Source: Dendrobates tinctorius
Taxonomy: Eukaryota
DNA length: 64,000 nucleotides
NCBI RefSeq assembly: GCF_039654945.1
Contig: NW_027361850.1
Location: 9,114,001-9,178,000, forward strand
Reading direction: 5' to 3'
Below are positions 3,924-47,785 of the stretch, piece after piece (position 1 is the stretch's first letter; each line of letters starts with the position of its first letter). The notes beneath the pieces are model-generated. The model ran no database searches, was not told the origin of the DNA, and was given only the letters and a program-made list of their open reading frames with translations. The translations under genes and the position numbers were made by a program.

Positions 3924-4062
3924 TTAGGGTTAGGGCTAGGGTTAGGGTTGTGGCTAAAGTTAGGGTTGAGGCTAAAGTTAGGGTTAGGGTTACGGTTTGG
4001 GTTAGGGTTGGGATTAGAGTTAGGGCTGGGATTAGGTTTAGAGTTGGGATTAGGGTTAGGGA
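3924..4062 (+). repeat. Degenerate (TTAGGG)n telomere-like tract inside the TTAA element
   Basis: About 23 hexamers: TTAGGG with CTAGGG, TTGGGA, TTAGAG and CTAAAG variants. Confidence 0.85.
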
Positions 4063-4092
4063 TGTGTTGGGGTTACGGTTGGATTTAGAATT

Positions 4093-8680: not shown

Positions 8681-8728
8681 GAGTTTAGACCCACCAGTTG
8701 GGGGTAGATTAAAATTTTTTGTTACCAA

Positions 8729-11699: not shown

Positions 11700-12070
11700 G
11701 CCTCTCTGGGGTCTGTACGGGCCTTTCGGGGGGCTGTGCCGGCCTGCCAGGGGGTCTGTGCAGGCTCCGGTGGTCTGTGCAGGCCTGCCGGGGGGCTGTG
11801 CAGGCTCCGGTGGGCTGTGCCGGCCTGCCGGGGGGCTGTGCCGGCCTGCCGGGGGGCTGTGCAGGCTCCGGGGGGCTGTGCCGGCCTGCCGGGGGGCTGT
11901 GCCGGCCTGCCGGGGGGCTGTGCCGGCCTGCCGGGGGGCTGTGCAGGCTCCGGTGGTCTGTGCCGGCCTGCCGGGGGGCTGTGCAGGCTCCGGTGGGCTG
12001 TGTCGGCCTGCCGGGGGGCTGTGCCGGCCTGCCGGGGGGCTGTGCAGGCTTCGGGGGTCTGTGCAGGCAT
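11700..12070 (+). repeat. GC-rich minisatellite (GGGGGCTGTGCCGGCCTGCC-like); inverted counterpart at ~14180-14430
   Basis: Direct inspection; explains the overlapping spurious ORFs. Confidence 0.9.
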
Positions 12071-12202
12071 CGTCCGATGGGACTACAAGTCCCATCGGGC
12101 GATGCCTGCTACCATGACTGTGATTGACACATTAGCCAATGATGGGACAGTAGTAGTCCCATCATCCGGCTAATGTGTTGAATGTAAAAAAAAATAAAAA
12201 AT

Positions 12203-12900
12203 TACATGCTACATACATACAACATGCATATTACATACATGCTACATTCATACTACATACTACATACATGCTACATTCATACTACATATATACTACATGC
12301 AACATACATACTACATATATACTACATGCAACATACATACTACATATATACTACATGCATGCAACATGCATACTACATATATACTATATGCTACATACAT
12401 ACTACATATATGCTACATACATACTACATATATACTACATGCATGCTACATACATACTGCATGCTACATACATACTACATATATGCTACATACATACTAC
12501 ATATATACTACATGCATGCTACATACATACTGCATGCTACATACATACTACATGCTACATACATACCACATATATACTACATACTACATGCTACATGCTA
12601 CATACATACCACATACATACTACATACATACTACATGCTACATACATACTACATATATACTACATGCATGCTACATACATACTACATGCTACATACATAC
12701 CACATATATACTACATACATACTACATGCTACATACATACTACATATATACTACATGCATGCTACATACATACTGCATGCTACATGCATGCTACATACAT
12801 ACTACATACATACTACATGCTACATACATACCACATATATACTACATACATACTACATACAATACATTCATACAATACATACATAGACATACAGTACATA
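12203..12900 (+). repeat. Complex (TACA/TACATGC/TAC) microsatellite; inverted counterpart at ~13255-14043
   Basis: Direct inspection. Confidence 0.95.
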
Positions 12901-15448
12901 TAACATAGAGTAACATACTTACCAATACTTGTCACATTGTTCCCCGAAGCCATTGTCTTTTACGGAATAAATATTAACATAACAAACCACAAAAATACTC
13001 ACCCACGATCCGAAGCAGTCCACGAGTGTGTCCCACGACGATCTTGGGTAGAGAACTGCAGCATCAGCTGTTGCTGCCGTTCTCTACGGGCTGCAGGAAT
13101 CCAATGACGGAAGGTAGGTATCCTTCCGCACTGTATTCCTCCGCCACTTAAAAAAAAAAAAGTCCCTAGTCTCACTTTATGCCATTGCTGCGTGGGAATT
13201 TCCCACGCAGCAATGGCATAAAGTGAGACTAGGGACTTTTTTTACTCTGTTATATGTACTGTATGTCTATGTATGTATTGTATGAATGTATTGTATGTAG
13301 TATGTATGTAGTATATATGTGGTATGTATGTAGCATGTAGTATGTATGTAGTATGTATGTAGCATGCATGTAGCATGCAGTATGTATGTAGCATGCATGT
13401 AGTATATATGTAGTATGTATGTAGCATGTAGTATGTATGTAGTATGTATGTGGTATGTATGTAGCATGTAGTATGCATGTAGTATGTATGTAGTATATAT
13501 GTAGTATGTATGTAGCATGTAGTATGTATGTAGCATGCATGTAGTATATATGTAGTATGTATGTAGCATGTAGTATGTATGTAGCATGCATGTAGTATAT
13601 ATGTAGTATGTATGTAGCATGTAGTATGTATGTAGCATGCATGTAGTATATATGTAGTATGTATGTAGCATGTAGTATGTATGTAGCATGCATGTAGTAT
13701 ATATGTAGTATGTATGTAGCATGTAGTATGTATGTAGTATGTATGTGGTATGTATGTAGCATGTAGTATGTATGTAGCATGCATGTAGTATGTATGTAGT
13801 ATGAATGTAGTATATATGTAGTATGTATGTAGCATGTAGTATATATGTAGTATGTATGTATGTAGTATGTATGTAGTATATATGTAGCATGTAGTATGTA
13901 TGTAGCATGCATGTAGTATATATGTGTTATGTATGTAGTATGTATGTATATATGTGGTATGTATGTGGTATGTATGTGGTATGTATGTAGTATGTATGTA
14001 GCATGTAGTATGTATGTAGCATGCATGTAGTATGTATGTAGTATTTTTTTTTTTTTTTTATAACATTTAACACATTAGCCGGATGATGGGACTACTACTG
14101 TCCCATCATTGGCTAATGTGTCAATCACTGTCATGGTAGCAGGCATCGCCAGATGGGACTTGTAGTCCCATCGGACGATGCTTGCACAGACCCCCGGACA
14201 TCAGCACAGCCCCCCGGCAGGCCGGTACAGACCCCCACAGGGTGCACAGCCCACCGGCAGGCCGGCACAGCCCCCCGGCAGGCCGGTACAGACCCCCACA
14301 GGGTGCACAGACCACCGGCAGGCCGGCACAGCCCCCCGGCAGGCCGGTACAGACCCCGGACAGTCCACACAGCCCCCCGGCAGGCCGGCACAGCCCCCCG
14401 GCAGGCCGGCAGAGACCCCCGGAAGGCCCGAAATGACGGCGCATCATGATGCGCACACACCGCGCATCATGATGACGTCAGGCTGTCAATCAACTTTGAA
14501 CTTCCGATTCCGATGCCGACTTCCGATATTGAAAAAATATCGGAAGTCGGTATCGGAATTCCGATACAGCAAGTATCGGCCGATACCCGATACTTGCGGT
14601 ATCGGAATGCTCAACACTAGTGTTCACCCTTACGGCACCATTGCTGCATGGAAAGTCAAGTCAATCACCTGAACAAGATGATTGGAGGTCAGGTGTTACA
14701 GACTGGGGAGATTTAAGTGAACAACCTTCCCTCAGCTCTTGCCGTGATTTGGTTTGCTTCCTGAGCACATTTTGAAGTCTTCTTGTCTCCTGCTCCGTCC
14801 TGCATCTTTCAGATAAGTTATTTGTCTTCTTGAATCTTTTTTTGCATTGGATCCATTTTTGTTTGTCTCTGATTGTTGCTTTGCTGGTGTAGTTCAACCT
14901 GGTTCCCTGCTGGGACCTGTGCTGGACCCTGTTCCATATGCCACAGCATATGTTAGTCTTTTTAGTAACCAGTTCACACCAGAGTTCTGATTTAGGGGGG
15001 GAGAGGTCATGTAACCTCAGTATTTTTGCATATCAGACATGTTGGATTTTTCTTAGGGTTTTTTGTGTGATTGCAGACAGTATCCTTTCCTGTCCTATCT
15101 AGACAGTTTGGGCCCCATCATTTGCTTACACTATTCTCTGCCTGTGTTTTGTGTTTCATCTTGTCTCACCAGCAATATATGTTTGGGGTTCTACTCTGGG
15201 GCAGTTTAGCCTTCCCATTTCTCTCTTTAGGCTTAGTTAATTCTGTGGCTGTGACGAGGTGTCTAGGGCATCGTAGGTATGTCGCACCGCTAATTCTAGT
15301 TGTGTTGTCAGTTTAGGGGACTACAATCCGCTAAGCTACCAACCTCTCTGGTTATCTGGTTGCCTTGTCTATTCCCCTGTTATTCTCCTCGGTTACCTAA
15401 TCATAACAGAATCACCGGCCAGACTGTAGATCCCAGGGTACTCTAAAG

Positions 15449-18400
15449 CAGTGGTCCCCAACCTTTTTTGCACCAGGGACCGGTTTCAAGCAAGACCATT
15501 CTTCCATGGCCCGGCAGGGCAGGGATGGTGGTGTGGAAGGGCGGGGCTTTGGTCATAAGGGGGCGGGGCTATGGACGCGGTTGTAGTGTAGCAGTGCATA
15601 CTTATAATTAAATAACATTTATAATGTGACTCAACTCACCATAGGTTTTGAATGAGTGTTCCAACACCCCCTTCTCCCCATCATTGCCTTCTCCCCATCA
15701 CTCCCTTCTCCCCATCATTGCCTTCACCCCATCACTCCCTTCTCCCCATCACTGCCTTCACCCCATCACTGCCATCTCTCCATCATTGCCTTCACCCCAT
15801 CACTCCCCTCTCCCCATCATTGCCTTCACCCCATCACTCCCCTCTCCCCATCATTGCCTTCACCCCATCACTGCTGTCTCCCCATCATTGCCTTCACCCC
15901 ATCACTCCCCTCTCCCCATCATTGCCTTCACCCCATCACTGCTGTCTCCCCATCATTGCCTTCACCCCATCACTCCCTTCTCCCCATCACTGCCTTCACC
16001 CCATCATTGCCTTCACCCCATCACTCCCCTCTCCCCATCATTGCCTTCACCCCATCACTCCCCTCTCCCCATCATTGCCTTCACCCCATCACTCCCTTCT
16101 CCCCATCACTGCCTTCACCCCATCACTCCCTTCTCCCCATCACTGCCTTCACCCCATCACTCCCCTCTCCCCATCATTGCCTTCACCCCATCACTCCCCT
16201 CTCCCCATCATTGCCTTCACCCCATCACTCCCCTCTCCCCATCATTGCCTTCACCCCATCACTCCCCTCTCCCCATCACTGCCTTCTCTCCATCATTGCC
16301 TTCACCCCATCACTCCCTTCTTCCCATCATTGCCTTCACCCCATCACTGCCGTCTCCCCATCATTGCCTTCACCACATCACTGCCATCTCTCCATCATTG
16401 CCTTCACCCCATCACTGCTGTCTCTCCATCACTCCCCCCATGGCCTTCTCCTCATGTCCCCATCTCCTCCAGGGCCAGGCTACACAAACACAGACCAACA
16501 CACACACACACAGACATACATGTACACACACAGACATACACACATTATACATACACACAGACACCACCTCTCTCCTCTCACCTGCCCGCCGCCCGCGCTT
16601 CCTCGCTCTGACACAGCAGCGGCGCGCTCCTCTCTGTGTCAGTCAGAGACAGGAAGCGCGGGCGGCGGGCAGGTAGCTGGACGGGTCCTTGCAGCTCCGC
16701 TCCTGCTATTCCCTCTTGCAGGCAGCGGAGCTGCTTGATCACTCCCTGGCCGCCGCTAAGAACTGCTGCGTGCCGCCCCAGCCCCCGCTACGCCACTGAC
16801 CGCCCCTGGCTCCCCTTGTGTCCGCGGAGTGCTCCATCACCCCCTTCTCCCCATCATTGCCTTCACCCCATCACTCCCTTCTCCCCATCACTCCCTTCAC
16901 CCCATCACTGCCATCACCCCATCACTGCCATCACCCCATCATTGCCTTCACCCCATCACTCCCCTCTCCCCATCATTGCCTTCACCCCATCACTCCCCTC
17001 TCCCCATCATTGCCTTCACCCCATCACTGCTGTCTCCCCATCATTGCCTTCACCCCATCACTCCCCTCTCCCCATCATTGCCTTCACCCCATCACTCCCT
17101 TGTCCCCATCACTGCCTTCACCCCATCACTCCCCTCTCCCCATCATTGCCTTCACCCCATCACTCCCTTCTCCCCATCACTGCTGTCTCCCCATCATTGC
17201 CTTCACCCCATCACTCCCCTCTCCCCATCATTGCCTTCACCCCATCACTCCCCTCTCCCCATCATTGCCTTCACCACATCACTCCCTTCTCCCCATCACT
17301 GCCTTCACCCCATCACTGCTGTCTCCCCATCATTGCCTTCACCCCATCACTCCCCTCTCCCCATCATTGCCTTCACCCCATCACTCCCTTCTTCCCATCA
17401 TTGCCTTCACCCCATCACTCCCCTCTCCCCATCACTGCCATCTCTCCATCATTGCCTTCACCCCATCACTCCCTTCTTCCCATCATTGCCTTCACCCCAT
17501 CACTCCCCTCTCCCCATCATTGCCTTCACCCCATCACTCCCTTCTCCCCATCACTGCCTTCACCCCATCACTGCTGTCTCCCCATCATTGCCTTCACCCC
17601 ATCACTCCCCTCTCCCCATCATTGCCTTCACCCCATCACTCCCCTCTCCCCATCATTGCCTTCACCCCATCACTCCCTTCTCCCCATCACTGCCTTCACC
17701 CCATCATTGCCTTCACCCCATCACTCCCCTCTCCCCATCACTCCCTTCACCCCATCACTCCCTTCTCCCCATCACTGCCTTCTCCCCATCACTGCCTTCT
17801 CCCCATCACTGCCTTCACCCCATCACTCCCCTTTCCCCATCACTGCCATCTCTCCATCATTGCCTTCACCCCATCACTCCCTTCTTCCCATCATTGCCTT
17901 CACCCCATCACTCCCCTCTCCCCATCATTGCCTTCACCCCATCACTCCCTTCTCCCCATCACTGCCTTCACCCCATCACTGCTGTCTCCCCATCATTGCC
18001 TTCACCCCATCACTCCCCTCTCCCCATCATTGCCTTCACCCCATCACTCCCTTCTCCCCATCACTGCCTTCACCCCATCACTCCCTTCTCCCCATCACTG
18101 CCTTCACCCCATCACTCCCCTCTCCCCATCATTGCCTTCACCCCATCACTCCCCTCTCCCCATCATTGCCTTCACCCCATCACTCCCCTCTCCCCATCAT
18201 TGCCTTCACCCCATCACTCCCTTCTCCCCATCACTGCCTTCACCCCATCACTCCCTTCTCCCCATCACTGCCTTCACCCCATCACTCCCCTCTCCCCATC
18301 ATTGCCTTCACCCCATCACTCCCCTCTCCCCATCATTGCCTTCACCCCATCACTCCCCTCTCCCCATCACTGCCATCTCTCCATCATTGCCTTCACCCCA

Positions 18401-19034
18401 TCACTCCCTTCTTCCCATCATTGCCTTCACCCCATCATTGCCTTCACCCCATCACTCCCCTCTCCCCATCATTGCCTTCACCACATCACTGCCATCTCTC
18501 CATCATTGCCTTCACCCCATCACTCCCCTCTCCCCATCATTGCCTTCACCCCATCACTGCTGTCTCTCCATCACTCCCCCCATGGCCTTCTCCTCATGTC
18601 CCCATCTCCTCCAGGGCCAGGCTACACAAACACAGACCAACACACATACACACACACAGACATACATGTACACACACAGACATACACACATTATACATAC
18701 ACACAGACACCACCTCTCTCCTCTCACCTGCCCGCCGCCCACGCTTCCTCGCTCTGACACAGCAGCGGCGCGCTCCTCTCTGTGTCAGTCAGAGACAGGA
18801 AGCGCGGGCGGCGGGCAGGAAGCTGGACGGGTCCTTGCAGCTCCGCTCCTGCTATTCCCTCTTGCAGGCAGCGGAGCTGCTTGATCACTCCCTGGCCGCC
18901 GCTAAGAACTGCTGCGCGCCGCCCCAGCCCCCGCTACGCCACTGACCGCCCCTGGCTCCCCTTGTGTCCGCGGACCGGCAAGGGCACTGCAGCGGCCCGG
19001 TGCTGGGCCGCGGACCGGCGGTTGGGGACCCCTG
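15449..19034. mobile_element. hAT (Charlie/Buster-type) non-autonomous element
   Basis: TIRs CAGTGGTCCCCAACC / GGTTGGGGACCCCTG; perfect 8-bp TSD CTCTAAAG with central TA (15441-15448, 19035-19042). Confidence 0.93.
15668..18575 (+). repeat. 17-bp minisatellite in two blocks (15668-16430, 16833-18575), each followed by the same ~390-bp unique tail
   Basis: Alternating CCCCATCATTGCCTTCA / CCCCATCACTCCCCTCT units; tail 16430-16825 matches 18575-18970. Confidence 0.95.
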
Positions 19035-27206: not shown

Positions 27207-29640
27207 TGTCATGCCCGCCATGTCTATTATGTCGCATGACTCCTGGAGCAGTGTGCACATGCACTGAATTCTCATGCCCGTTATGTCTCGAGCTGCAAGA
27301 TGCCTGGAGCAGTGTGCACATGCGCCTTACCTCATGGCTGCACGCCGTTGCTAGGTAACCATCCGTCTCTGCTCTGATTCTGCAATCCTCTGTATTCCTG
27401 GAACCCCTGATCATGTGACCTTTCCTATGTTCTAGCACTGTCTGATTCTGCAATCCTCTATGTATTTCTGGAAACCCTGATCATGTGACCTTCTCTATGG
27501 TTCAGCCCAGTCTGATCTAGCAATGCTCTCTATGATCCTGGAGGATCTGAACCGGAAGGCTTTCCCTGATCCTCACCCGGAAGTGCAGGTGCTATGGTGC
27601 TATATCAGACCGCCCCTTCCTATGGTCGGGGGCCTGAGTATTGTGTTGCTTCCCTGCATGGCTGCTTGGTCTGCTCGGTCACTCCCTGTATTCTGTGTCC
27701 CTGCACTCTGCTCTGTGCTTGTACTCTGTCTCTTGTCTCGTGCCATGTCCTGTGTTGTCTCTCATGCCATGTTTGTCCTTTCCTTGCTTTGCCTTGTGGT
27801 ACTTCCGCTGTTCTCTGCCTTAGCCTGTTTTGCTATGTCTCGCCTTAGCTATTCTTTGACTTGTAGTCCTTCCTCTGTTCTCTACCTTGCCTGTTTCGCC
27901 ATGTCTGGCCTTTGCTATTCTGAGCCTTGTAGTACTTCCGCTGTTCTCTGCCTTAGCCTGTTTTGCTATGTCTTGCCTAAGTTCTTCCTTGCTCTTACCT
28001 ATGGTGCTCTGTAGTGCCTCCTGGCACACGCACCATTCCTCCTCTCTTACCTTTTGTGCTCTCTTGCACATTTCTACGCTAGTCTCAAGGTTCTCCCTTG
28101 ACCCGGCTCTGGGCTTCGGCCTACGCTCCAGTGCTAGCTCTGTTCTCGCTCTGACCTGGCTCTGTGTTTCTGCCTACGTTCCGCTCATTGTTCCGTACCC
28201 TGCCTAGCTTTGCCTTGTTTCTTGCTTTGCCTTGCCTTGTTTCTTCATGTGCCCTTTGCATGTGCCTGGCCTTCCTAGCCTCCTGCTTGTGCCTCAGCCG
28301 TGCCCGCCCTAGCCGTGCCCGCCTGTTTGTGCCTCAGCCGTGCTCATCGGTCAGTGGCAGCTGTGTCGCCTGCAATGCCCTGGAGTCTTGCCCGCCTGTT
28401 TGTGCTGCAGCCCGTCCAGCTAGCCAGTGCCCCAGCCGTGCTCTCTGTGCTTCCTTGCACCTACGATGTCTCTGCACTGTGCTCTCCGTGCATCTCTTAG
28501 CACGCGCAGGCCCTCGCCTGCCCCGTGGCATACCTCCCCGTGCTTCTGTAAAAGTACGCGCAGGTCTAGCCATGTACCCTGTTGTGCCCTCTCGCATGCA
28601 CAGGTCCTACACTGAACTCTGTCCCTGGCGTGCCCTCTGCACGCGCAGGACTCTGCTTTTAACCCTGACCCTGGCGTGCCCTCTGCATGCGCAGGACTCT
28701 GCCTTGAACCCTGAGCCTGGCGTGCCCCTCTGCACGCACAGGACTCTGCCTTGAACCCTGACCCTGGCGTGCCCCTCTGCACGCACAGGACTCTGCCTTG
28801 AACCCTGACCCTGGCGTGCCCCTCTGCACGCACAGGACTCTGCCTTGAACTATGACCCTGGCGTGCCCTCTGCACGCGCAGGACTCTGCCTTGTCCCTTG
28901 TGCCTTGGCGTGTCTCTATACACGCATCCAGTCTTGTATGTTGAACTTTGAACCCTGGCGCGTCCCCTACACACGCACCGTGTTTCACACTGTGAACCTG
29001 GCGTGTCCCCTACACACGCACCTTGCCCTTTGCCCTGGACCCTGGTGTGCCTCTAGCATGCACCCTGCCTGGAATCTTGCCTTGGACCTCGGTGTATTCC
29101 CTAACACGCACCATGCCTGGAGATCCGTCGTGCCTCCTTGCTTGTACCCTGGTTTGCCTGCTGGATTCCCGGAGCCTGCCATCCCTGCCAGAGATCGTAA
29201 GCATGAAGTCTACAGCCTGATCCCTGCAGCTGTCCGGAGTCCGATGTCATCGTGTCCTTGCCGGTAACCAGGCTTGCCTTCTAGCACGTACTATTCCATG
29301 GACCATGGCGTGCCATGCATGCACCTTGCCGTGTTTGCTTGTTATCATGTTTTGCACTGAATGTTATCCTGAATTTGTCTTAATGAAGATACCTTGAACT
29401 TATGTCTTGTCCTGTCTTGTTTCCTGCACGTCCTTGTCGTCTGACACTCGTACCTAGTGTCTGTGAGCCGGCCGTCTGGTGCCAGCAGTCGTGGTGGCTC
29501 ACCCCCTTGGTCTTGTCCCTGACACTCCCTGTATAGGGGGTGGTTCCTCACAAAGTCAGCTCGCCCTAGGTCGGTGGGTGCCACGACTCAGAGGGTCCAC
29601 TCTAAAGAAAGTCGACTCAGCGTAAGCTGACCTCGTCACA
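27207..29640 (+). mobile_element. Very long solo LTR (C, 2434 bp) inserted in the RT of element B
   Basis: TGTCATG..CGTCACA termini, 5-bp TSD GTGTA/GTTTA, B reading frame continuous across it (FLGYVMS|TQGISMD); 3' end shares CCCTGTATAGGGG and CAGAGGGTCCACTC with LTR D; ~44-bp internal repeats at 28600-29050. Confidence 0.8.
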
Positions 29641-29645
29641 GTTTA

Positions 29646-30350
29646 GACATTACGTACCCCAGAAATTGAATTTCGGTCTTATGGAATTCACACTTTTCAA
29701 GTTTGATGTAAAGATGGTTCTGTCTTAGGCATTCTAGAACCATTCTCACATATCCATGATGTTCCTCTCTGGAGTTAGAAAAAATTAAAATATCATCCAG
29801 ATAAATCACCACGAATGTATCTAGGAGATCCCTGAAGATGTCATTCACCAAGTGTTGGAAAGTGGCTGGGGCGTTACACAGTCCAGAAGGCATGACTAGA
29901 TATTCAAAGTGTCCGTAGCGTGACCTGAATGCAGTCTTCCAATCATCTCCAGGTCTAATACGGACAACGTTATAGGCCCCACCGAGATCCAGTTTAGAGA
30001 AAATTTTGGCATGCCGCACTCTCTCCAATAACTCCGGCATCAAAGGCAATGGATAACGGTTTCTAACAGTAACCTTATTGAGCTCCCTATAGTCTATGCA
30101 GGGTTTCAGCGATCCATCCTTCTTCTTTACAAAGAAGATGGGTGCACCTGCAGGAGATGAAGAGTGGCGTATGAAGCCCTTGGCTAGATTTTTGTCTATA
30201 TAGTCCTTCAAGGCCTTTAGCTCAGGCCCCGCCAGGGGGTAGATCATACCAAAAGGTATCTCTGCTCCAGGCAATAATTCAATTGGAAAATCATATGGAC
30301 GGTGAGGGGGAAGCTGGTCAGCATTCTTCTTGTCACACACATCCGCTTAG
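29646..30350 (-). pseudogene. Reverse transcriptase of Gypsy B
   Basis: [36 protein letters not shown]. Confidence 0.95.
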
Positions 30351-30366
30351 TCCTGGTGTACAGCTG

Positions 30367-32616
30367 TAAAAAACAAATCTGAACTGAGAAAAGTAAGTTA
30401 ATGTGTATGCACAATGTAAGTGCATATTAACACATGACCATTAACCAGAGAAAACAAAAAGCAAAAAACACAAATATCCTGAACTAAAAGTAAAAAATAC
30501 TGTAAATAATGCATAAAGGTAATAATAATAATAAGGGTATTTAGTAAACATAATTTTGATCAAAATAATGTACAAGCCATCCCGCCACGTCACGGCAACC
30601 CTTGTGGGACAGTCCCTACTCTAGTATTTAAAACCTTTTCACTTGCCAAGTGGCGTGAATGTGAATAAGGGTCGAGCGGCTGAACCACTAGTAACAGCTT
30701 AGGCCAGACTGGATGGCTTTCCCAGCTCAGAAAGAGGGCGGTCACACCCATATATGCACTGAATGCACAATGAAATGAATAAAAAACAAATCTGAACTGA
30801 GAAAAGTAAGTTAATGTGTATGCACAATGTAAGTGCATATTAACACATGACCATTAACCAGAGAAAACAAAAAGCAAAAAACACAAATATCCTGAACTAA
30901 AAGTAAAAAATATACTGCAAATAATGCATAAAGGTAATAATAATAATAAGGGTATTTAGTAAACATAATTTTGATCAAAATAATGTACAAGCCATCCCGC
31001 CACGTCACGGCAACCCTTGTGGGACAGTCCCTACTTTATTCATTTCATTGTGCATTCAGTGCATATATGGGTGTGACCGCCCTCTTTCTGAGCTGGGAAA
31101 GCCATCCAGTCTGGCCTAAGCTGTTATTAGTGGTTCAGCCGCTCGACCCTTATTCACATTCACGCCACTTGGCAAGTGAAAAGGTTTTAAATACTAGAGT
31201 AGGGACTGTCCCACAAGGGTTGCCGTGACGTGGCGGGATGGCTTGTACATTATTTTGATCAAAATTATGTTTACTAAATACCCTTATTATTATTATTACC
31301 TTTATGCATTATTTGCAGTATATTTTTTACTTTTAGTTCAAGATATTTGTGTTTTTTGCTTTTTGTTTTCTCTGGTTAATGGTCATGTGTTAATATGCAC
31401 TTACATTGTGCATACACATTAACTTACTTTTCTCAGTTCAGATTTGTTTTTTATTCATTTCATTGTGCATTCAGTGCATATATGGGTGTGACCGCCCTCT
31501 TTCTGAGCTGGGAAAGCCATCCAGTCTGGCCTAAGCTGTTACTAGTGGTTCAGCCGCTCGACCCTTATTCACATTCACGCCACTTGGCAAGTGAAAAGGT
31601 TTTAAATACTAGAGTAGGGACTGTCCCACAAGGGTTGCCGTGACGTGGCGGGATGGCTTGTACATTATTTTGATCAAAATTATGTTTACTAAATACCCTT
31701 ATTATTATTATTACCTTTATGCATTATTTGCAGTATATTTTTTACTTTTAGTTCAGGATATTTGTGTTTTTTGCTTTTTGTTTTCTCTGGTTAATGGTCA
31801 TGTGTTAATATGCACTTACATTGTGCATACACATTAACTTACTTTTCTCAGTTCAGATTTGTTTTTTATTCATTTCATTGTGCATTCAGTGCATATATGG
31901 GTGTGACCGCCTTCTTTCTGAGCTGGGAAAGCCATCCAGTCTGGCCTAAGCTGTTACTAGTGGTTCAGCCGCTCGACCCTTATTCACATTCACGCCACTT
32001 GGCAAGTGAAAAGGTTTTAAATACTAGAGTAGGGACTGTCTCACAAGGGTTGCCGTGACGTGGCGGGATGGCTTGTACATTATTTTGATCAAAATTATGT
32101 TTACTAAATACCCTTATTATTATTATTACCTTTATGCATTATTTGCAGTATATTTTTTACTTTTAGTTCAGGATATTTGTGTTTTTTGCTTTTTGTTTTC
32201 TCTGGTTAATGGTCATGTGTTAATATGCACTTACATTGTGCATACACATTAACTTACTTTTCTCAGTTCAGATTTGTTTTTTATTCATTTCATTGTGCAT
32301 TCAGTGCATATATGTGTGTGACCGCCCTCTTTCTGAGCTGGGAAAGCCATCCAGTCTGGCCTAAGCTGTTACTAGTGGTTCAGCCGCTCGACCCTTATTC
32401 ACATTCACGCCACTTGGCAAGTGAAAAGGTTATAAATACTAGAGTAGGGACTGTCCCATAAGGGTTGCCGTGACGTGGCGGGATGGCTTGTACATTATTT
32501 TGATCAAAATTATGTTTACTAAATACCCTTATTATTATTATTACCTTTATGCATTATTTGCAGTATATTTTTTACTTTTAGTTCAGGATATTTGTGTTTT
32601 TTGCTTTTTGTTTTCT
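30367..32616 (+). repeat. Retroposed multimer of a 415-bp non-coding unit: 1.6 inverted copies (30367-31034) plus 3.8 direct copies (31036-32621)
   Basis: Unit starts at 31036, 31451, 31866, 32281; flanked by the 14-bp duplication CTGGTGTACAGCTG (30353-30366, 32617-32630). Confidence 0.95.
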
Positions 32617-32630
32617 CTGGTGTACAGCTG

Positions 32631-34000
32631 GTAGTTCCAGGACTGACATGGTTCCTTTAGGAACAGAGCAAACTTCTGGACTCATCTGTTTCTCCGGAAA
32701 GTGTAGTTCCTTGGTCTCCCAGTTAATTGTAGGGTTCTGAGCCTGCAACCATGGCAGCCCTAGAATAATGGGAAAGTGGGGAGAAGAGATAAGCATAAAA
32801 GACGGTTTCTCCTGATGATCTTTACCCATAAGGACCTTCAAAGGCTCCGTTTCCTGATCCACTGGTCCAGAGGTCAGCAGGGAGCCATCCACAGTCTCCA
32901 TCTGTACTGGAGTAGCCTTCTTCACTGAACGTATCCCATGTTTCAAAGCAAAGGAAATATCCATAAAATTGCCACTCGCCCCTGAGTCGATCATAGCAGA
33001 GCTAGACACCCAGACAGAGTCAACCCAGAGTTTAAATGGAAAGGAAGCAATGAGAATTGTTCTTCTTACAGCTCAGCTGGGACACTGCTGAGGAAACTTG
33101 AAAAATTGCTGCGTTTACACAGTCATCGGCCTCAGAACTAACAGAGTTTAAGTCCGAGAAATCAATAGCTATGGCTGCAGATCTCTCTGGAGCCTGAGGC
33201 TCAGACATGACAGACCTCCTTTCGCAACACTCACAGTGAATGACTGCTGCAGTCGTCTTACGAGAATGGCTGGGGCAGTTTATAATGAAGTGCCCTGACT
33301 TACCGCAGTAGAAACATAGATTTTCCTTTAGGCGATGTTCCTTGCGTGCATCACTAACCCGTCTCTGTACTAAGTCCACCTGCATGGGTTCAGGTTCTGG
33401 TTCCCTTGTGATTCTACTCAAAGTTTCCTTAGCTGGGGAGGAAGGTAGGAAAAAGTTAGTGCAATTACTTTCGAACCATCTCTCCTGTCTGCGTTCAGTT
33501 AGACAAGCATCGATACGGATGCAGTAGTTAATAAATTCACCTATCGCAGTGGGAGGGTCTGCTCGAGCAAGTTCATCTTTAATCAGAGGAGACAACCCCT
33601 TCCGAAAAATAGATTTTTTTAGCGGAACTGTCCCAGGTGGTATCAAGAGCCCATCTTCTGAAATCCAAGGCATATTCGGCTACTGAGCGCTTACCTTGGC
33701 ACAAAGCTAACGTGGCTGCTTCAGCTGTTGCACCTCGGTTGGGGTCATCAAACACCTGCCCCATGGCTTCGGTTGGGGTCATCAAACACCTGCCCCATGG
33801 CTGAAATGAAAGCATCCAGATGATTCAAACATTCATCCTCAGTCTCAATCAGGGGGATTTGCCCAAATCAGAGCCTTGTTGGTAAGCAGCATGATTATAG
33901 TAAGTAGTTTGGACCGTTAAGTGGGAAATTGTGAAACGTGCAAAGAAAAATAGGTTGCCTTGGTTAATAAATCCCCTGAATTTTTCACGTTCACAGCCAA
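32631..34000 (-). pseudogene. gag and protease of Gypsy B
   Basis: LCQGKRSVAEYALDFR, EPMQVD, CFYCGKSGHFIINC, MIDSGASGNF, ILGLPWL. Confidence 0.9.
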
Positions 34001-40091: not shown

Positions 40092-40444
40092 GCAGCTGTC
40101 ACGTCGGCGGCGGTAGCCGCCGCCGTTCCAGCAACAGCGGGGCCCGCCGCCGCCTTTACTTACCTGCGCTCGCCGCGCCGCTCTGTGCCCGCCTCCTCTT
40201 CCTTCTCCTCCGTCCAGCGTGTGCCGGCTTCCTGCGGGCGCCTTAGGCCGCGGGCGCGCGCTCTGCAGATCCTTTAACCCTGCAGCGCCGCCCAGCGGTC
40301 TGAGCGCCCAATCAGCCCACTTCTGCAGGGTATATCAGGCGTCTCCAACATGGTGGAGACGCCCGATTATCGTGTGGACTTCCGTGCGGTATCCTGGCCT
40401 GGGTGTTTAGGGGTTTCTCCCTTCTCACTCCTTACATGCCTCCG

Positions 40445-40710
40445 CTCCGTCCTGTACTCTGTGCCTCTGCCCAGTCCTGTACTCCGTGCCTCTGCTCCGT
40501 CCTGTACTCCGTGCCTCTGCTCCGTCCTGTACTCCGTGCCTCTGCTCCGTCCTGTACTCCGTGCCTCTGCTCCGTCCTGTACTCCGTGCCTCTGCTCAGT
40601 CCTGTACTCCGTGCCTCTGCCCAGTCCTGTACTCCGTGCCTCTGCCCAGTCCTGTACTCCGTGCCTCTGCCCAGTCCTGTACTCCGTGCCTCTGCCCAGT
40701 CCTGTACTCC
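40445..40710 (+). repeat. 25-bp VNTR within LTR D; a shorter array lies in the 3' LTR at ~45573-45745
   Basis: TCCGTGCCTCTGC(CCA/TCC)GTCCTGTAC units; LTR lengths 842 vs 742 bp. Confidence 0.9.
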
Positions 40711-40951
40711 AGTGCCCAGTCCGATACTCCAGTTCTCAGTCCGGCACCCTCCACTCAGTCCTTCGAGCCGCCCCTCTTGGTTCTAGCAGTCGCGGTATCT
40801 GTCTTCTGAGGGTCTGCCCCTAACGGCCCCTGTATAGGGGTCGGCACCACCTGGCGCGCTCACCCCTGGGAGCTCCAGTGCCGCGATCCAGAGGGTCCAC
40901 TCTCGGACGTAACCTATCTTATCTCAGCATACGTCACAGCATAATCAGGCC

Positions 40952-43900
40952 ATGGACCCTGCTAGCGCCTCAGCGGCCACCCAAAAAGAATTGCTCTTTT
41001 TGCGTGAAAATCAGACTAGAATAATGTCTTTTATGAAGTCCATGGACACCCGCCTTTCCGCCTTACAAACCAACGACCCGGGGAACGCCCCGTTGCTAGC
41101 AGGACTCCAGCAGGAGCTCGTGCAGCAGCGTGACGCCCAATCCCACATTCTTAGCTACATGGCGTCCGTGGACGACCGACTCCAATCGCTACAGTCCTCT
41201 GCTGCCGCTTCTGTCCTACCTCGGGATCCCCTAGCCCATCCTCCACCACCATGCTTGGGGAAACCTCCCAGGTTTAGCGGTGACCCCAAGTTGTGTCGGA
41301 GGTTTTTGAACCAGTGCCGTTTGCACTTCGAGCTCCTGCCTCAGCAATACCCCTCGGATCGGGCCAAGGTAGCTTTCATTGTGTCCCATTTAGAGGGAGA
41401 GGCCTTAGCCTGGGTAAATCCCCTCTGGGAGAGAGATGACCCGGTGGTATCTAGCATCCACAACTTCCTGGATACTTTCCGCAGGGTATTTGATGAGCCT
41501 GGCCGTGTGGCCTCCACCACGGAGGCTCTTTTCAATCTTCGCCAAGGCTCCCTCACCGTCGGTCAATATGCTATCCGCTTCCGGACCCTGGCCTCTGAAC
41601 TGGGGTGGAATAACGAGGCTTTGGTTGGGGCCTTTTGGAGGGGACTCTCGGGTAAAATAAAGGATGAGCTGGCTGGCCGGGACACCCCTACCATTCTGGA
41701 GGATCTCATATCCCTAGCTACCCGTATTGATTTACAGTTCCAGGAACGCTCCCGGGAGTCAGTTAGGGAGAAGAGATCTTTTCGGTTATACCAGGCGCCC
41801 ATTCCCCGCTCTCCAGCGTCTTCCAGTAATTCCACTCCTGAGCCCATGCAAGTAGACCGTGTGAGGTTGTCAGAGCAGGAACGCAGGGAGAGAAGGACAC
41901 AGGGCCTTTGCCTTTATTGTGGCGGGGCTAACCATTTTGTGCGCACGTGCCCAGTGCGGCCTGGGAAACGCCTCCGCCTAGGCCAGGTAAGAGAGGCCTC
42001 CCTAGGTGACACCGATTCCTCTCTACCCCTTACTATTTCGGCTTTAATTGTTTCAGGTCGGGAGCGCAGATCTGTGGAGGCGTATGTGGACTCGGGTGCG
42101 GCTGGTAACTTCATCCGGCTCAAGGAAGTGGACCAGCTGCGAATTCCAGTTGTGACGTTAGAGAGTCCGCGCTCCATCGCTTCCGTGGATGGCAAACCGC
42201 TATCTGAACCTATCACCATGGTCACTCTTGAGGTGGAGATACAAGTTGGAGCTCTTCACCGAGAAAAAATCGCCTTTTATGTTTTGCCCAGTTTGTCTCA
42301 TGCCGTGCTCCTAGGCTTACCCTGGCTTCGTCTACACGAGCCCGTTCTAGACTGGCATTCCGGGGAGATCCTCCGTTGGGGACACTTCTGCCATAAACGC
42401 TGTCTGTTGCCGGTATCTCGCCCCAGTCCGCAGCAAGCTCCTATCGACCTTCCTGGGCTCCCTACGGCTTACCACTCGTTTGCAGACGTCTTCAGTAAGA
42501 AGGAGGCTGAGATTCTACCGCCGCATCGTGCCTATGACTGCCCTATTGAGCTGTTGCCAGGAGCAATCCCTCCCAGGGGAAGAATTTATCCCCTGTCGCC
42601 GGCAGAAACCGCGGCCATGTCTGAATATGTCCAGGAGAACTTGGCTCGGGGTTTTATTCGGAAGTCATCTTCTCCTGCTGGAGCAGGATTCTTTTTCGTC
42701 CGGAAGAAAGACGGATCCCTTCGGCCATGTATTGACTACCGAGGCATGAACAGTATCACGGTCAAGAATAGGTATCCCCTGCCGCTGATCCCAGAACTCT
42801 TTGACCGCTTGAGAGGGGCCCGGATCTTCACCAAATTGGATCTGCGGGGAGCCTATAACTTGATCCGAATCCACTCCGGGGATGAATGGAAGACGGCCTT
42901 CAATACTCGGGACGGCCATTACGAGTATTTGGTTATGCCCTTTGGTCTCTGCAATGCCCCTTCGGTTTTTCAGGAGTTCGTTAATGAGATCTTCCGAGAC
43001 CAACTCTACTCTTCTGTCGTGGTATACTTAGATGACATACTCATCTTTTCCCCCGACTTATCCACTCACAGAAAAAGTGTTCGGCTGGTTCTGCAACGTC
43101 TACGGGAGAACAGACTCTACGCCAAACTAGAAAAGTGTCTGTTCGAGCAGTCCTCGTTGCCTTTCCTAGGGTATATCATCACGGACTCCGGAATAATGAT
43201 GGATCCCGAAAAATTGGCTGCCGTGCTCAAGTGGCCACGTCCGGTTGGAGTAAAAGCGATCCAGCGGTTCCTGGGTTTTGCGAACTATTACAGACAGTTC
43301 GTTCCCTTCTTCTCCTCGGTAACCAAGCCCATCTCTGTCCTGACCAGGAAGGGGACCAAACCAAATGCCTGGACTCCAGAGGCTGAAGAGGCCTTTCTTG
43401 CTTTGAAGCAGTCCTTTGCTACCGCCCCGGTTCTACATCGACCGTTGGTCAATAGGCCCTTCATCCTAGAAGTGGATGCCTCTTCTACTGGTGCGGGAGC
43501 GGTGCTTTCTCAGCGGACCACTTCTGGTCAAGTGGTACCATGTGGATTCTTCTCTAGGTCGTTCTCTCCCGCAGAATGCAATTATGCCATTGGGGACCGG
43601 GAATTACTGGCCATTAAGATGGCCCTGGAGGAGTGGCGGTATCTTTTGGAAGGGGTGGTCCATCCATTCATAATCTTCACTGACCACAAGAACTTGGCAT
43701 ATCTTCAGTCCGCGCAAAGGCTCAACTCCAGGCAAGCCAGGTGGTCGCTATATTTCTCCCGGTTTGACTTCAAACTCCATTTTCGACCGGGGGACAGAAA
43801 CATCAAGGCAGATGCTCTGTCCAGGTCCCTACAATCACCTGAGGTTGAGGAGGGGTCATCTCACATCATTGAGCCTGCCAAAATTGTCACCGTGGCGCCC

Positions 43901-45412
43901 GTGACGCTTTCTCCCATCCCGCCAGGCAAGAAACTCGTTCCACAGAATAAGAGATCTGAGGTCCTGGATTGGAGGCATTCTTCCAAGGTTGCGGGTCACG
44001 TCGGGGTCAAGAAAACCCTCAGCCTTCTTTCGCGCTACTACTGGTGGCCATCCCTTCGCCAAGATGTGACTGATTTTATATCCTCCTGTACGGCTTGTGC
44101 TCTGAACAAGGTACCTAGAAGTCTGCCGTCCGGTCTGCTCCACCCTTTGCCTCCTCCTGAAGCCCCTTGGCGACAAATTGGTATGGATTTCATCACCGAT
44201 CTTCCACGTTCTTCCGGATGTACTACCATCTTAGTAGTGGTCGATCGGTTCTCCAAAATGGCCCATTTCATCCCTCTGCCCGGATTACCCACGGCATCTG
44301 AGCTGGCCAAGGTCTTCATACACCAGATCTTTAGGCTTCACGGACTCCCTCAACGAATTGTCTCTGATCGCGGAGTCCAATTTACCTCCCGTTTCTGGAG
44401 GGCACTCAGCAAGCTCATGGGTATATCTCTAGACTTCTCCTCTGCTTATCACCCTCAGTCCAATGGACAAGTTGAGCGAATCAACCAGGTATTAACAGCC
44501 TACCTGCGTCACTTCTCGAACGCCCATCAAGACAACTGGGTGTCTCTTCTGCCGTGGGCAGAGTTTGCCCACAACAACCACCCCAGTGAGTCCACCACCA
44601 AAACGCCGTTCTTCGTGGTTTCCGGCCAGAACCCTGGTGTTCCACTACCTCTCCCTACGCCTTCTGGTGTTCCTGCAGCAGATGCCCTCGCCACCGAATT
44701 TTCTCAAGTCTGGAAGGAGACCAGAGAAGCTCTTGAAAGATCCAGTATCCGGATTAAAAGACATGCAGATAAGAGGCGCAGGGACCTTCCACCTTACCAA
44801 CCTGGCGACAAAGTTTGGCTGTCAACTAAGTATATCCGTTTGAAGTTGCCTTCTTACAAACTGGGTCCTCGGTACATCGGCCCGTTCCAGGTCTTGGGAC
44901 GCATTAATAACGTGGCTTATAAATTGAAGTTGCCGGCTTCGCTTCGGGTCCCTAACGCCTTCCATGTCTCGCTCCTTAAACCTGTTGTGCTGAATCGGTA
45001 CTGCTCAGCTCCTCCTTCTTCTCCTCAGCCAGTAGGGGCTGATGATGTCTTTGAGGTGAAAGAGATTCTTGCCGTGAAAAAAGTTCGGGGGCGTACCCTC
45101 TACCTTGTTGATTGGAAGGGTTTTGGTCCCGAGGAGAGGTCCTGGGAGCCTAAAGAGAATATTAATGCTCCTCGTCTTTTAAAGAGGTTTTTGTCTAACC
45201 TCAAGAAGGGGAGACGTAAAGGGGGGGGTACTGTCACGTCGGCGGCAGTAGCCGCAGCCGTTCCAGCAACAGCGGGGCCCGCCGCCGCCTTTACTTACCT
45301 GCGCTCGCCGCGCCGCTCTGTGCCCGCCTCCTCTTCCTTCTCCTCCGTCCAGCGTGTGCCGGCTTCCTGCGGGCGCCTTAGGCCGCGGGCGCGCGCTCTG
45401 CAGATCCTTTAA
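40952..45412 (+). CDS. Gag-Pol polyprotein (capsid, zinc knuckle, protease, RT, RNase H, integrase, chromodomain), 1486 aa
   Basis: CLYCGGANHFVRTC, VDSGA, YLDD, EVDAS..TDH, H..GH..CTAC, MDF/SDRG/GQVE, GPF motif, FEVKEIL..YLVDWKGF..SWEP. Confidence 0.97.
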   Translation: MDPASASAATQKELLFLRENQTRIMSFMKSMDTRLSALQTNDPGNAPLLAGLQQELVQQRDAQSHILSYMASVDDRLQSLQSSAAASVLPRDPLAHPPPPCLGKPPRFSGDPKLCRRFLNQCRLHFELLPQQYPSDRAKVAFIVSHLEGEALAWVNPLWERDDPVVSSIHNFLDTFRRVFDEPGRVASTTEALFNLRQGSLTVGQYAIRFRTLASELGWNNEALVGAFWRGLSGKIKDELAGRDTPTILEDLISLATRIDLQFQERSRESVREKRSFRLYQAPIPRSPASSSNSTPEPMQVDRVRLSEQERRERRTQGLCLYCGGANHFVRTCPVRPGKRLRLGQVREASLGDTDSSLPLTISALIVSGRERRSVEAYVDSGAAGNFIRLKEVDQLRIPVVTLESPRSIASVDGKPLSEPITMVTLEVEIQVGALHREKIAFYVLPSLSHAVLLGLPWLRLHEPVLDWHSGEILRWGHFCHKRCLLPVSRPSPQQAPIDLPGLPTAYHSFADVFSKKEAEILPPHRAYDCPIELLPGAIPPRGRIYPLSPAETAAMSEYVQENLARGFIRKSSSPAGAGFFFVRKKDGSLRPCIDYRGMNSITVKNRYPLPLIPELFDRLRGARIFTKLDLRGAYNLIRIHSGDEWKTAFNTRDGHYEYLVMPFGLCNAPSVFQEFVNEIFRDQLYSSVVVYLDDILIFSPDLSTHRKSVRLVLQRLRENRLYAKLEKCLFEQSSLPFLGYIITDSGIMMDPEKLAAVLKWPRPVGVKAIQRFLGFANYYRQFVPFFSSVTKPISVLTRKGTKPNAWTPEAEEAFLALKQSFATAPVLHRPLVNRPFILEVDASSTGAGAVLSQRTTSGQVVPCGFFSRSFSPAECNYAIGDRELLAIKMALEEWRYLLEGVVHPFIIFTDHKNLAYLQSAQRLNSRQARWSLYFSRFDFKLHFRPGDRNIKADALSRSLQSPEVEEGSSHIIEPAKIVTVAPVTLSPIPPGKKLVPQNKRSEVLDWRHSSKVAGHVGVKKTLSLLSRYYWWPSLRQDVTDFISSCTACALNKVPRSLPSGLLHPLPPPEAPWRQIGMDFITDLPRSSGCTTILVVVDRFSKMAHFIPLPGLPTASELAKVFIHQIFRLHGLPQRIVSDRGVQFTSRFWRALSKLMGISLDFSSAYHPQSNGQVERINQVLTAYLRHFSNAHQDNWVSLLPWAEFAHNNHPSESTTKTPFFVVSGQNPGVPLPLPTPSGVPAADALATEFSQVWKETREALERSSIRIKRHADKRRRDLPPYQPGDKVWLSTKYIRLKLPSYKLGPRYIGPFQVLGRINNVAYKLKLPASLRVPNAFHVSLLKPVVLNRYCSAPPSSPQPVGADDVFEVKEILAVKKVRGRTLYLVDWKGFGPEERSWEPKENINAPRLLKRFLSNLKKGRRKGGGTVTSAAVAAAVPATAGPAAAFTYLRSPRRSVPASSSFSSVQRVPASCGRLRPRARALQIL

Positions 45413-47638
45413 CCCTGCAGCGCCGCCCAGCGGTCTGAGCGCCCAATCAGCCCACTTCTGCAGGGTATATCAGGCGTCTCCAACATGGTGGAGACGCCTG
45501 ATTATCGTGTGGACTTCCGTGCGGTATCCTGGCCTGGGTGTTTAGGGGTTTCTCCCTTCTCACTCCTTACATGCCTCTGCTCCGTCCTGTACTCCGTGCC
45601 TCTGCCCAGTCCTGTACTCCGTGCCTCTGCCCAGTCCTGTACTCCGTGCCTCTGCCCAGTCCTGTACTCCGTGCCTCTGCCCAGTCCTGTACTCCGTGCC
45701 TCTGCCCAGTCCTGTACTCCGTGCCTCTGCCCAGTCCTGTACTCCAGTGCCCAGTCCGATACTCCAGTTCTCAGTCCAGCACCCTCCACTCAGTCCTTCG
45801 AGCCGCCCCTCTTGGTTCTAGCAGTCGCGGTATCTGTCTTCTGAGGGTCTGCCCCTAACGGCCCCTGTATAGGGGTCGGCACCACCTGGCGCTCTCACCC
45901 CTGGGAGCTCCAGTGCCGCGATCCAGAGGGTCCACTCTCGGACGTAACCTATCTTATCTCAGCATACTTCACAGCAGCGAGCAATTCAGGAAACACATGC
46001 CGCATAACATTCATGCCTACCACTACTTCTGTTGTATCTCCTTTAGCCATAGTAACAATTACACCTTGACCTGGTAACTTACGATCCCCAATTTGGATGA
46101 TGGGTTCCCAGTAGCCTAGCTGGGGAACAGATTGACCATTACTTGCAATCACACTTAACCTCGCTTTGCCCACTGGATTCAGAATATCATAGTCCCAATT
46201 CTTCTCAAAAGTTTGGCGGTCAATGGTGGTAACTTGTGAACCAGTGTCTAGCAAAGCTTCCAAAGGTACACCATCAATCCATATGGTTATATACTGGCAT
46301 TTGGAGACAAACCTGGAGACTCATTGTGACTGTCCCTCTGGGCCTTTGGATTCACCTCCCGAGGGGTGGCCCTCAGCCTCAGGGGTTACCAGTTTAACTT
46401 ATAGCATTGATACATATAGAGCTCAGTACAATAAGTACAGTAGACACAATCTCCAGATGGAAGCCCTCCAGCACCTGGGCGACTAGAACGTGGTTTTGGG
46501 GACACTGCCTGACTTATGGATGAGTCGCGTGGTGCAGGGGATTGGCTTTTTAGTTCCTTTAAGGCTTGACATAGAGTCAAGGACTTGGACAAGTGCATCT
46601 GTGGTAATAGGAGTATGACCGAGAGTAGGGGCTGGCACGTACTGTGTGGCCTGCATAAATGGAGCAGGTGAAGGTGGAGATACAGTGGATATTCCGGCAG
46701 CCAGGTCTAGAGAACAAGGAGCAGAAGCATAACTGGGACAAGGTGAGTCATTACCCACTACCCGCAAGGCTAGAGCTTTAAAGTCTAAGAAAGTCATGCT
46801 GGTGTTTTGTGCTGCTAGCATGCGGAGTTGACTTTGTATGAGTCTGGAATCCACACCTTCTATGAATCTGTCAGTGATTATATTTTCTGTAGCAGCAGGA
46901 TCTAGTTTGTCTATTTGCTGTAAAGCCCTGTATGCAGACTGAAGGGCTAATGTGCAGTCCCGGAGGGTCTCACCTGGTTCCTGACGTCAGCTGTAAAATT
47001 TTAGATGAACCTCGGTAGGCTACTGGCGCTCAAATTCTTTTCTCAGGCGCGTGAGGATCTGTTCTACGCTGGTCTTTTCAGTAGATGACCAGGAACGGAC
47101 TTCTTCAGCTGCTGGACCTTCAAGCTGACCCAGGAGAAGCTGTACCCGCTGATGGGGAGAAAGTGAGAAGAGTTCAAGAGTGTACAATAGTTTTTCTTTG
47201 AACCCAGCAAGTGTATGGGGATCTCCTCTGTAGCTTGGGAGACTAGAGGTTCTTATGAAGAATGGCATGCCAGTGGCCATGACAGGGGCTGGAAACGGGT
47301 TTTCGGCATTAGCCTGTGAAACTGGAACACTAGCTGATGACGATGATGGTGTAGCGTTAGTGGACCCTGCCTGGTCATTATGAAGAGGGTCAGACATTTT
47401 GGTGATAACAGTACTGTCTCTTTAAGAATAAGGACGACACTGTAACTTAAAGAAATGCACAATTATACAGCAACACAGTTTGTGAAATGGAAGGCTCCCC
47501 CTCTTGAATATAGCACTGCTGGAAACAAGAATTTGCACTTATCTGTATAACTTGAGAGGCAGGAGAGGAGAGAAGCTGTTGCAGAAGTCGGTCACAGTGT
47601 GTGCAAAACAGGCAGGCATCTAAGTGATATTACAATTA

Positions 47639-47785
47639 ATATTAGCCTGATGAAGGGACCTTCTGAGCCCTGAAAGCTTTCAAATATAATTTCTCTGGTT
47701 AGCAATATTAGCCTGATGAAGGGGCTTTCTGAACCCAGAAAGCTTGCAAATATAATCTCTATGGTTAGCCAATAAAGGTATCACT
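47639..47785 (+). ncRNA. Two tandem minimal type I hammerhead ribozyme motifs (66-nt period), PLE pseudo-LTR remnant
   Basis: CTGATGA at 47647 and 47713, AGGG/CCCT-type stem II, GAAA at 47672 and 47738, palindromic AAGCTT stem III, stem I ATATTAGC/GCAAATAT, followed by AATAAAGGTATCAC. Confidence 0.8.

Follow-up and report, generated by a model that had tools for sequence, protein, structure and literature searches.

A 415-bp satellite-like repeat block bearing the marks of RNA-mediated insertion in Dendrobates tinctorius

It has long been asked how satellite DNA founds arrays at loci far from existing ones, and the proposals that have been made mostly involve either eccDNA or capture by transposons. 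Where reverse transcription is concerned, twin priming of the L1 type comes with an A-tail and with a TT/AAAA nick site.

The described systems that come closest to the locus reported here are the Penelope-like elements (PLEs) and the animal non-LTR retrozymes. PLE insertions form partial tandems, often with an inverted and 5'-truncated copy directly upstream, and their TSDs are variable in length (PMC8557442). A PLE protein has been shown to cleave and extend both DNA strands, and reverse transcription begins inside the RNA rather than at its 3' end; its dominant substrate was unprocessed RNA, a multi-copy transcript has been proposed as the template in vivo, and hammerhead cleavage is not required (PMC11167929). 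The non-LTR retrozymes of vertebrates co-occur with PLEs and are related to PLE pLTRs (10.64898/2026.07.22.740005).

Here we describe a block of 5.4 copies of a 415-bp unit, 1.6 of them inverted and 3.8 direct, that interrupts a Gypsy-type element in a 64-kb window from Dendrobates tinctorius (the window being the whole stretch of DNA that was analyzed). The block belongs to a very abundant satellite-like family and carries an unusually complete set of RNA-mediated insertion marks, namely a TSD, priming at a microhomology and an inversion geometry that involves both strands. The locus provides a clean natural example of a satellite block that lacks a ribozyme and was seeded through RNA, the RNA intermediate being a well supported deduction.

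Anatomy of the insert and its host element

The insert has a length of 2,250 bp (30367-32616) and is bounded by perfect 14-bp direct repeats, CTGGTGTACAGCTG (Table 1). Tandem Repeats Finder assigns its direct array an exact 415-bp period with 99% matches and 0% indels (score 3125). When the unit at 31450-31864 was used as a BLAST query it returned four direct copies together with inverted pieces at 30371-30783 and 30784-31038, and no further copies elsewhere in the 64-kb window. The two arms constitute 547-nt inverted repeats with 99% complementarity. In unit phase, the inverted arm's outer end overlaps the beginning of the direct arm by 2-4 nt, and the computed chance of the arm phases agreeing within 4 nt is about 0.02. 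The 3' end of the insert has no A-tail, nor is there any other poly(A) or microsatellite tail. Instead the direct array ends on a 5-nt microhomology, CTGGT, which is the site where first-strand synthesis was primed; as these bases are common to the unit and to the target, the true TSD is 9-14 bp. All details of the anatomy given in a preliminary description of this locus (the TSD, the 3.8 direct and 1.6 inverted copies, the abutting ends and the CTGGT overlap) were confirmed. At its other end the inverted arm stops at G165 (window position 31034), immediately ahead of a hairpin-forming palindrome, GGGACTGTCCC.

Table 1. Positions, in the window, of the parts of the insert and of the Gypsy-type element that surrounds it
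Feature	Position	Strand	Remarks
Downstream portion of the Gypsy-type host: RT part of pol	29636-30352	-	RVT_1, E=3.6e-36; RT at 30340-29636
Left TSD copy, 14 bp, CTGGTGTACAGCTG	30353-30366		AVHQ in the Gypsy frame
Inverted arm, 1.62 units, 669 nt	30367-31034/31035	-	Phase 165/164 (inner) to phase 4 (outer end, adjoining the left TSD), in unit sense
Inversion junction	31035-31037		T at 31035 fits both arms (1-nt overlap)
Direct array, 3.82 units head-to-tail, 1,587 nt	31035-32621	+	Phase 1-3 to phase 342, ending mid-unit
CTGGT, unit phases 338-342	32617-32621		First 5 bases of the target repeat; 5-nt microhomology
Right TSD copy, 14 bp, CTGGTGTACAGCTG	32617-32630		AVHQ in the Gypsy frame
Upstream portion of the Gypsy-type host: aspartic protease and gag zinc knuckle	32631-33673	-	zf-CCHC, RVP_2, Asp_protease_2 (33673-32578)

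The insertion point falls in the protease-RT linker of the minus-strand Gypsy-type element. Translation of the natural flanks, with the frames compared, shows that the host reading frame gives AVHQ across both copies of the 14-bp repeat, which indicates a clean insertion with target duplication rather than a chance repeat. The host copy contains one in-frame TAA, directly after the TSD on the RT side, and its flank departs from the contigs of its own family at 4 positions in ~270 nt (about 1.5%), with the longest contig matched to the flank showing 4 differences in 174 nt (2.3%). Judged from the sequence, the insert is necessarily younger than the Gypsy element around it. A search for an LTR pair by which to date that element gave none, and no paralogous empty site occurs within the 64-kb window.

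The insert copies are nearly identical. With the copy at 31450-31864 taken as the reference, 8 substitutions and one 2-bp deletion are present in 2,255 nt (0.4%). One copy has C93T and G307A, another C48T and C177T, and a third G36T, T153A and C180T; the outer inverted copy has G281A in addition to the 2-bp deletion. Six of the 8 substitutions are transitions and 0 are at CpG. All of the substitutions and the deletion are private to single copies, as had been noted in the preliminary description, and contig data confirm this for the three variants of the last copy, which are either absent from the family or present at no more than 0.06%.

The window also contains a variety of other repeats and elements. 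A Gypsy gag-pol of 1,486 aa that seems to be intact and includes a chromodomain (40952-45412, plus strand) is flanked by 25-bp tandem arrays (40437-40716 and 45572-45751) that are probably located in its LTRs. A CR1-like LINE on the minus strand (58116-60544) has three broken frames, an AP-endonuclease part, a typical C-terminal region and an RT at 58837-60243 (RVT_1, E=3e-28). On the plus strand at 8018-10431, an ORF with a LAP2alpha domain (E=1.5e-11) precedes a 400-aa ORF that has no Pfam match and then a weak tyrosine-recombinase match (E=5.6e-4); this region may be a DIRS- or Crypton-like element. There is also a large inverted structure at 11700-14430, with up to 97% complementarity over 317 nt, whose arms are composed of GC-rich 21-bp arrays (11708-12068/14204-14428) and TACA-type microsatellites (12203-12908/13245-14044). 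Finally, a 3-kb minisatellite of 17/34-bp period (15542-18575) generates long but spurious reading frames, the largest of 769 aa, on more than one frame, and at 3924-4080 about 26 degenerate TTAGGG copies (67% matches) form an interstitial array.

The 415-bp unit and its family

The 415-bp unit has a GC content of 37.3% and a T-rich sense strand (166 T in 415); a GC-richer stretch covers phases 34-213, with the remainder of the unit AT-rich. We found the unit in 20 runs from 9 studies. Runs of the same species contain 86-98% of its sampled words, and a second (sister) species contains 46-57%, corresponding to roughly 2% divergence (about 98% identity). Four runs were aligned to one permuted unit plus flank (32207-32900), all runs being in the form of contigs and none being recorded as RNA.

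The family is enormously abundant and is tandem in DNA. Word depths in the DNA run X1 sum to 1.7-9.2e5 for the unit and to 107-705 for the Gypsy flank, a ratio of about 1000 (2,849 contigs aligned) in which depth serves as a rough proxy and not as a copy number. By rough arithmetic the unit makes up ~7% of the letters in X1, a share that likewise derives from summed depth and does not equate to copy number. A joint that goes back 415 across the phase 342/343 boundary is present in all four aligned runs, as is given by either a tandem or a circular unit. In the assembly of run X11, two contigs without flanks close the unit into a 415-nt cycle, and a tandem array would look the same. In the small runs X2 and X11 the unit constitutes only 0.05-0.1% of the letters, and thus these are not whole-genome DNA and could be either RNA or reduced-representation DNA; a 1% carry-over of DNA into RNA libraries would yield the same share. 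Among the loose ends listed, those that lead into clearly unrelated sequence occur at the scattered phases 11, 38, 215, 236, 298, 334 and 397, and among the best-supported loose ends no single junction with foreign sequence dominates. Most of the family is therefore not part of a larger element, with the reservation that repeat unitigs break at branch points.

The family is also very homogeneous, with its commonest polymorphisms reaching 10-20% at four sites. At these four sites all 5.4 copies of the insert have the major allele, which has a probability of about 0.03 if the units are assumed to be independent, which they are not. The preliminary description had used the private nature of the changes as an argument for a circular template, but this argument does not discriminate, as neighboring units of a homogeneous source array would also look identical.

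There is little in the unit to suggest a coding function or a known origin. Its only recurrent ORF in the insert is of 82 aa, with neither an exact match nor a homologue in the protein collections searched, and the insert has no RT/GIY-YIG ORF. ARAGORN detected no tRNA in the unit and no SINE origin was found. A search of full text with 23-24-mers of the unit, and for a frog satellite of this kind, did not find a published description of the 415-bp repeat, and when metagenomes were scanned with a conserved unit 20-mer, the three matches obtained (21-22 nt, in contigs of no relation) were attributable to chance.

There also does not appear to be a ribozyme. The hammerhead core CTGA.GA is absent from both strands of the unit, in agreement with the preliminary description, which had also noted no credible ORF. 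Rfam 15 returned noise only, in gathering as well as evalue mode (to E=10), with no Hammerhead family and no relevant match to HDV-like, twister, pistol, hatchet, hairpin or VS ribozymes, although it also missed minimal hammerhead-like motifs at 47647-47741 that do carry CTGATGA...GAAA. These motifs belong to a separate feature of the window at 47638-47774, where two 66-bp tandem units, each with CTGATGA, a stem of 4 bp, GAAA and then the palindrome AGCT, look like a minimal PLE-type hammerhead that would cleave as a dimer and are unreported by Rfam even at E=1. In the 415-bp unit, a loose home-made HDV-like descriptor gave one match, which begins at G165, the same base at which the inverted arm ends. 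This match is poor, with only AT pairs in P2 and P3 and a J1/2 of 55 nt, and was rejected as chance, as shuffled sequences give 0-8 matches. A candidate structured core of 180 nt at 31483-31662 was similarly rejected, its MFE of -57.5 being equal to the shuffle mean of -57.5 (z = 0.0). When folded as a circle, the entire unit is 59% paired (z = -2.6), with no marked excess of stability over shuffles. The suggestion in the preliminary description that an undescribed processing mechanism may be at work thus finds no support, given the negative Rfam result, an HDV-like match at chance level and a core with z = 0.0.

Template, priming and competing explanations

The explanation that we favor, with moderate confidence, is that the block is a young retro-insertion of a linear multimeric plus-sense transcript of an abundant satellite-like family, with Penelope-style priming from both strands. 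An RNA intermediate and priming from both target strands are well supported deductions; a Penelope-type enzyme acting in trans and a linear template are the most likely agents. The direct arm has its RNA-3' end at the right repeat and the inverted arm has its RNA-3' end at the left repeat. Only the plus sense places the RNA-3' ends of both arms against the target, and thus the template was of plus sense; with the opposite RNA sense the arms would meet the target by their 5' ends, which is incompatible with target priming. The TSD and the inversion geometry accordingly support the proposal in the preliminary description that a plus-sense non-coding multimer was retroposed by target-primed reverse transcription.

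The events at this locus may be pictured as follows. The protease-RT linker of a Gypsy copy would have received a staggered break of 9-14 bp, after which the bottom-strand 3' end would have annealed to CUGGU (phase 338-342) and primed a cDNA through 3.8 units. At phase 4 of the same template, the top-strand 3' end would have started another cDNA, which would have copied 1.6 units towards the 5' side of the RNA before ending at G165. If the first cDNA then stopped where the second had begun, this would produce the inverted-plus-direct structure with its abutting phases. The enzyme would have acted in trans, and most likely would be a Penelope-like RT with a GIY-YIG endonuclease. Most simply, the template would be a linear transcript of at least 2.25 kb produced from a genomic array by read-through or pol II. 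Stretches of at least four T occur 9 times on the sense strand, so that pol III cannot have made a multimer, and pol II or read-through would be responsible instead. As tandem arrays are abundant in the genome, linear multimeric transcripts of at least 2.25 kb are plausible and a circle need not be invoked. This explanation assumes that the family is transcribed. There are also several points against it. No PLE gene is present in the 64-kb window, and neither nick, CCAG^GAC or GCTG^GTA, is in AT-rich sequence, whereas the Anolis and Drosophila PLE nucleases are reported to prefer such sites. In addition, a lineage that moved only as linear multimers would lose array length in each generation, a loss that a rolling-circle step avoids.

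This last point, which is not decisive, also counts in favor of the template that the preliminary description regarded as the simplest, a 415-nt circular RNA that is copied round repeatedly as a retrozyme-like replicon, with something other than a hammerhead releasing and ligating the monomer. We regard such a template as rather unlikely for this insert. It is in keeping with the exact 415 period without junction variation, and with copies that equal the family consensus except for private changes; a template of one unit would likewise account for the major allele at each of the common polymorphic sites. A total of 5.4 units is within the range for vertebrate retrozymes, for which a rolling-circle model has been proposed (10.64898/2026.07.22.740005; PMC7229834), and the closed cycle of X11 is what a circle would give, though a tandem array gives the same picture. 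However, the unit has no known self-cleaving motif, with the HDV-like match falling within the shuffle range, and neither its GC-rich core (z = 0.0) nor the circular unit, only 59% paired (z = -2.6), favors a processed circle. Two polymerases working on one 415-nt circle while tethered to both target ends would also be topologically harder, and genomic tandem arrays are in such vast excess that a circle is not required. Thus, of the original proposal, retroposition of a multimer stands, but the circle no longer qualifies as the simplest template when there is an abundant tandem DNA source. A genomic tandem source capable of explaining a linear multimer, which the preliminary description had recognized as counting against its model, was found in part, in the form of head-to-tail joints in four runs. 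For this insert a circular template is neither supported nor excluded. It is improbable, in our view, that the 415-nt family as a whole is a retrozyme that has no ribozyme, or has a new one, and that spreads by rolling-circle reverse transcription of a monomeric circular RNA. If it were, a satellite filling several percent of a genome would be renewing its arrays by an undescribed route of cleavage and ligation.

The remaining explanations differ in the enzyme or dispense with the RNA. Twin priming on a linear satellite transcript by a LINE of the L1, CR1 or L2 type acting in trans, as occurs for processed pseudogenes, would account for the abutting inversion and the 9-14-bp TSD, which together make up the classic L1 twin-priming picture, and a CR1-like LINE is indeed present in the window (58116-60544). 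We nevertheless consider this distinctly unlikely, as the insert lacks both a poly(A) or microsatellite tail and a TT/AAAA target, and initiation was internal, at a microhomology; moreover, the unit and the LINE in the window have no sequence in common, including no common 3' tail. An event at the DNA level, either the capture of extrachromosomal satellite DNA or MMBIR-type template switching into a satellite and back, could draw on an extremely abundant satellite, on the established formation of eccDNA from tandem repeats and on junction microhomologies of 0-5 nt. Such an event predicts neither the 14-bp duplication nor the phase match of the arms (chance about 0.02), and a later inversion would need a breakpoint exactly at the insert boundary, which makes it very improbable. 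Least probable of all is an assembly artefact in a satellite-rich region, which we consider to have almost no chance of being correct: the locus-specific variants were not recovered in the low-coverage X1 contigs, but phase 165 meets phase 1 at the junction, unlike in the self-palindrome of a fold-back read; in addition, the host frame and the TSD are clean, and the copies have distinct private variants.

Comparison with known systems

The proposed retroposition of a linear satellite multimer in the Penelope style can be compared with four described systems. The inversions that arise by L1 twin priming, and L1 retrocopies made in trans, resemble the insert in that an inverted 5' part abuts the start of a direct 3' part within a TSD, which at 9-14 bp falls in the L1 range of 7-20. 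The insert differs in having no poly(A) and no TT/AAAA nick site, and in having the transcript of a tandem repeat as its template. Because the A-tail and the TT/AAAA site are both absent, the PLE style is preferred over the L1 type, and the Penelope-like picture is the better fit to the insert.

PLE insertions (PMC8557442, PMC11167929) show the same combination of a partial tandem and an adjacent inverted 5'-truncated copy within one TSD. The insert also shares with them internal initiation (phase 342/415, with the second start at phase 4), the absence of an A-tail and priming from both strands. Even its lack of a hammerhead has a counterpart, as hammerhead-less PLE clades (Naiad and Chlamys) are known. 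The insert is unlike PLE insertions in that it has no RT/GIY-YIG ORF and consists entirely of a 415-nt non-coding repeat; in addition, its target is not AT-rich and the 30-40-bp "tail" cannot be defined in a pure tandem.

As in classical satellite DNA with its dispersed euchromatic blocks, the family is homogeneous, arranged head-to-tail, very high in copy number and also present in a sister species. What sets the block apart is that it bears the marks of RNA-mediated insertion, rather than those of unequal exchange or of eccDNA capture. If this pattern recurs genome-wide, then a major satellite would be spreading by reverse transcription, and there would be a natural case of non-coding tandem arrays mobilized in the Penelope style without a hammerhead. 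The family is young, homogeneous and abundant, and consequently the question is directly testable in Dendrobates tinctorius.

The likeness to animal non-LTR retrozymes and to PLE insertions that was put forward in the preliminary description is borne out, with the hammerhead left aside. In common with these retrozymes (Cervera and de la Pena 2020, PMC7229834; Li, Clavereau and Pollet 2026 preprint), the insert is a short non-coding tandem whose unit is within their 50-970-nt range, with a low GC content (37%), a TSD of more than 4 bp, a non-autonomous nature and presumed mobilization by a PLE RT. Its 5.4 units are also within their usual range of seven or fewer. The 415-bp family is, by the proxy of depth, far above the copy numbers reported for vertebrate retrozymes, and while monomeric circular RNA is a feature of retrozymes, the 415-bp unit is known here from DNA sequence and contigs. 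A further difference is that the insert has neither the type I hammerhead, the motif that defines the family, nor any other known ribozyme. The insert thus works like an animal non-LTR retrozyme and yet falls outside the family by its defining motif. Mobilization that is free of a hammerhead would agree with the dispensability of ribozyme cleavage in vitro, and it would widen the retrozyme concept beyond units that carry a ribozyme.
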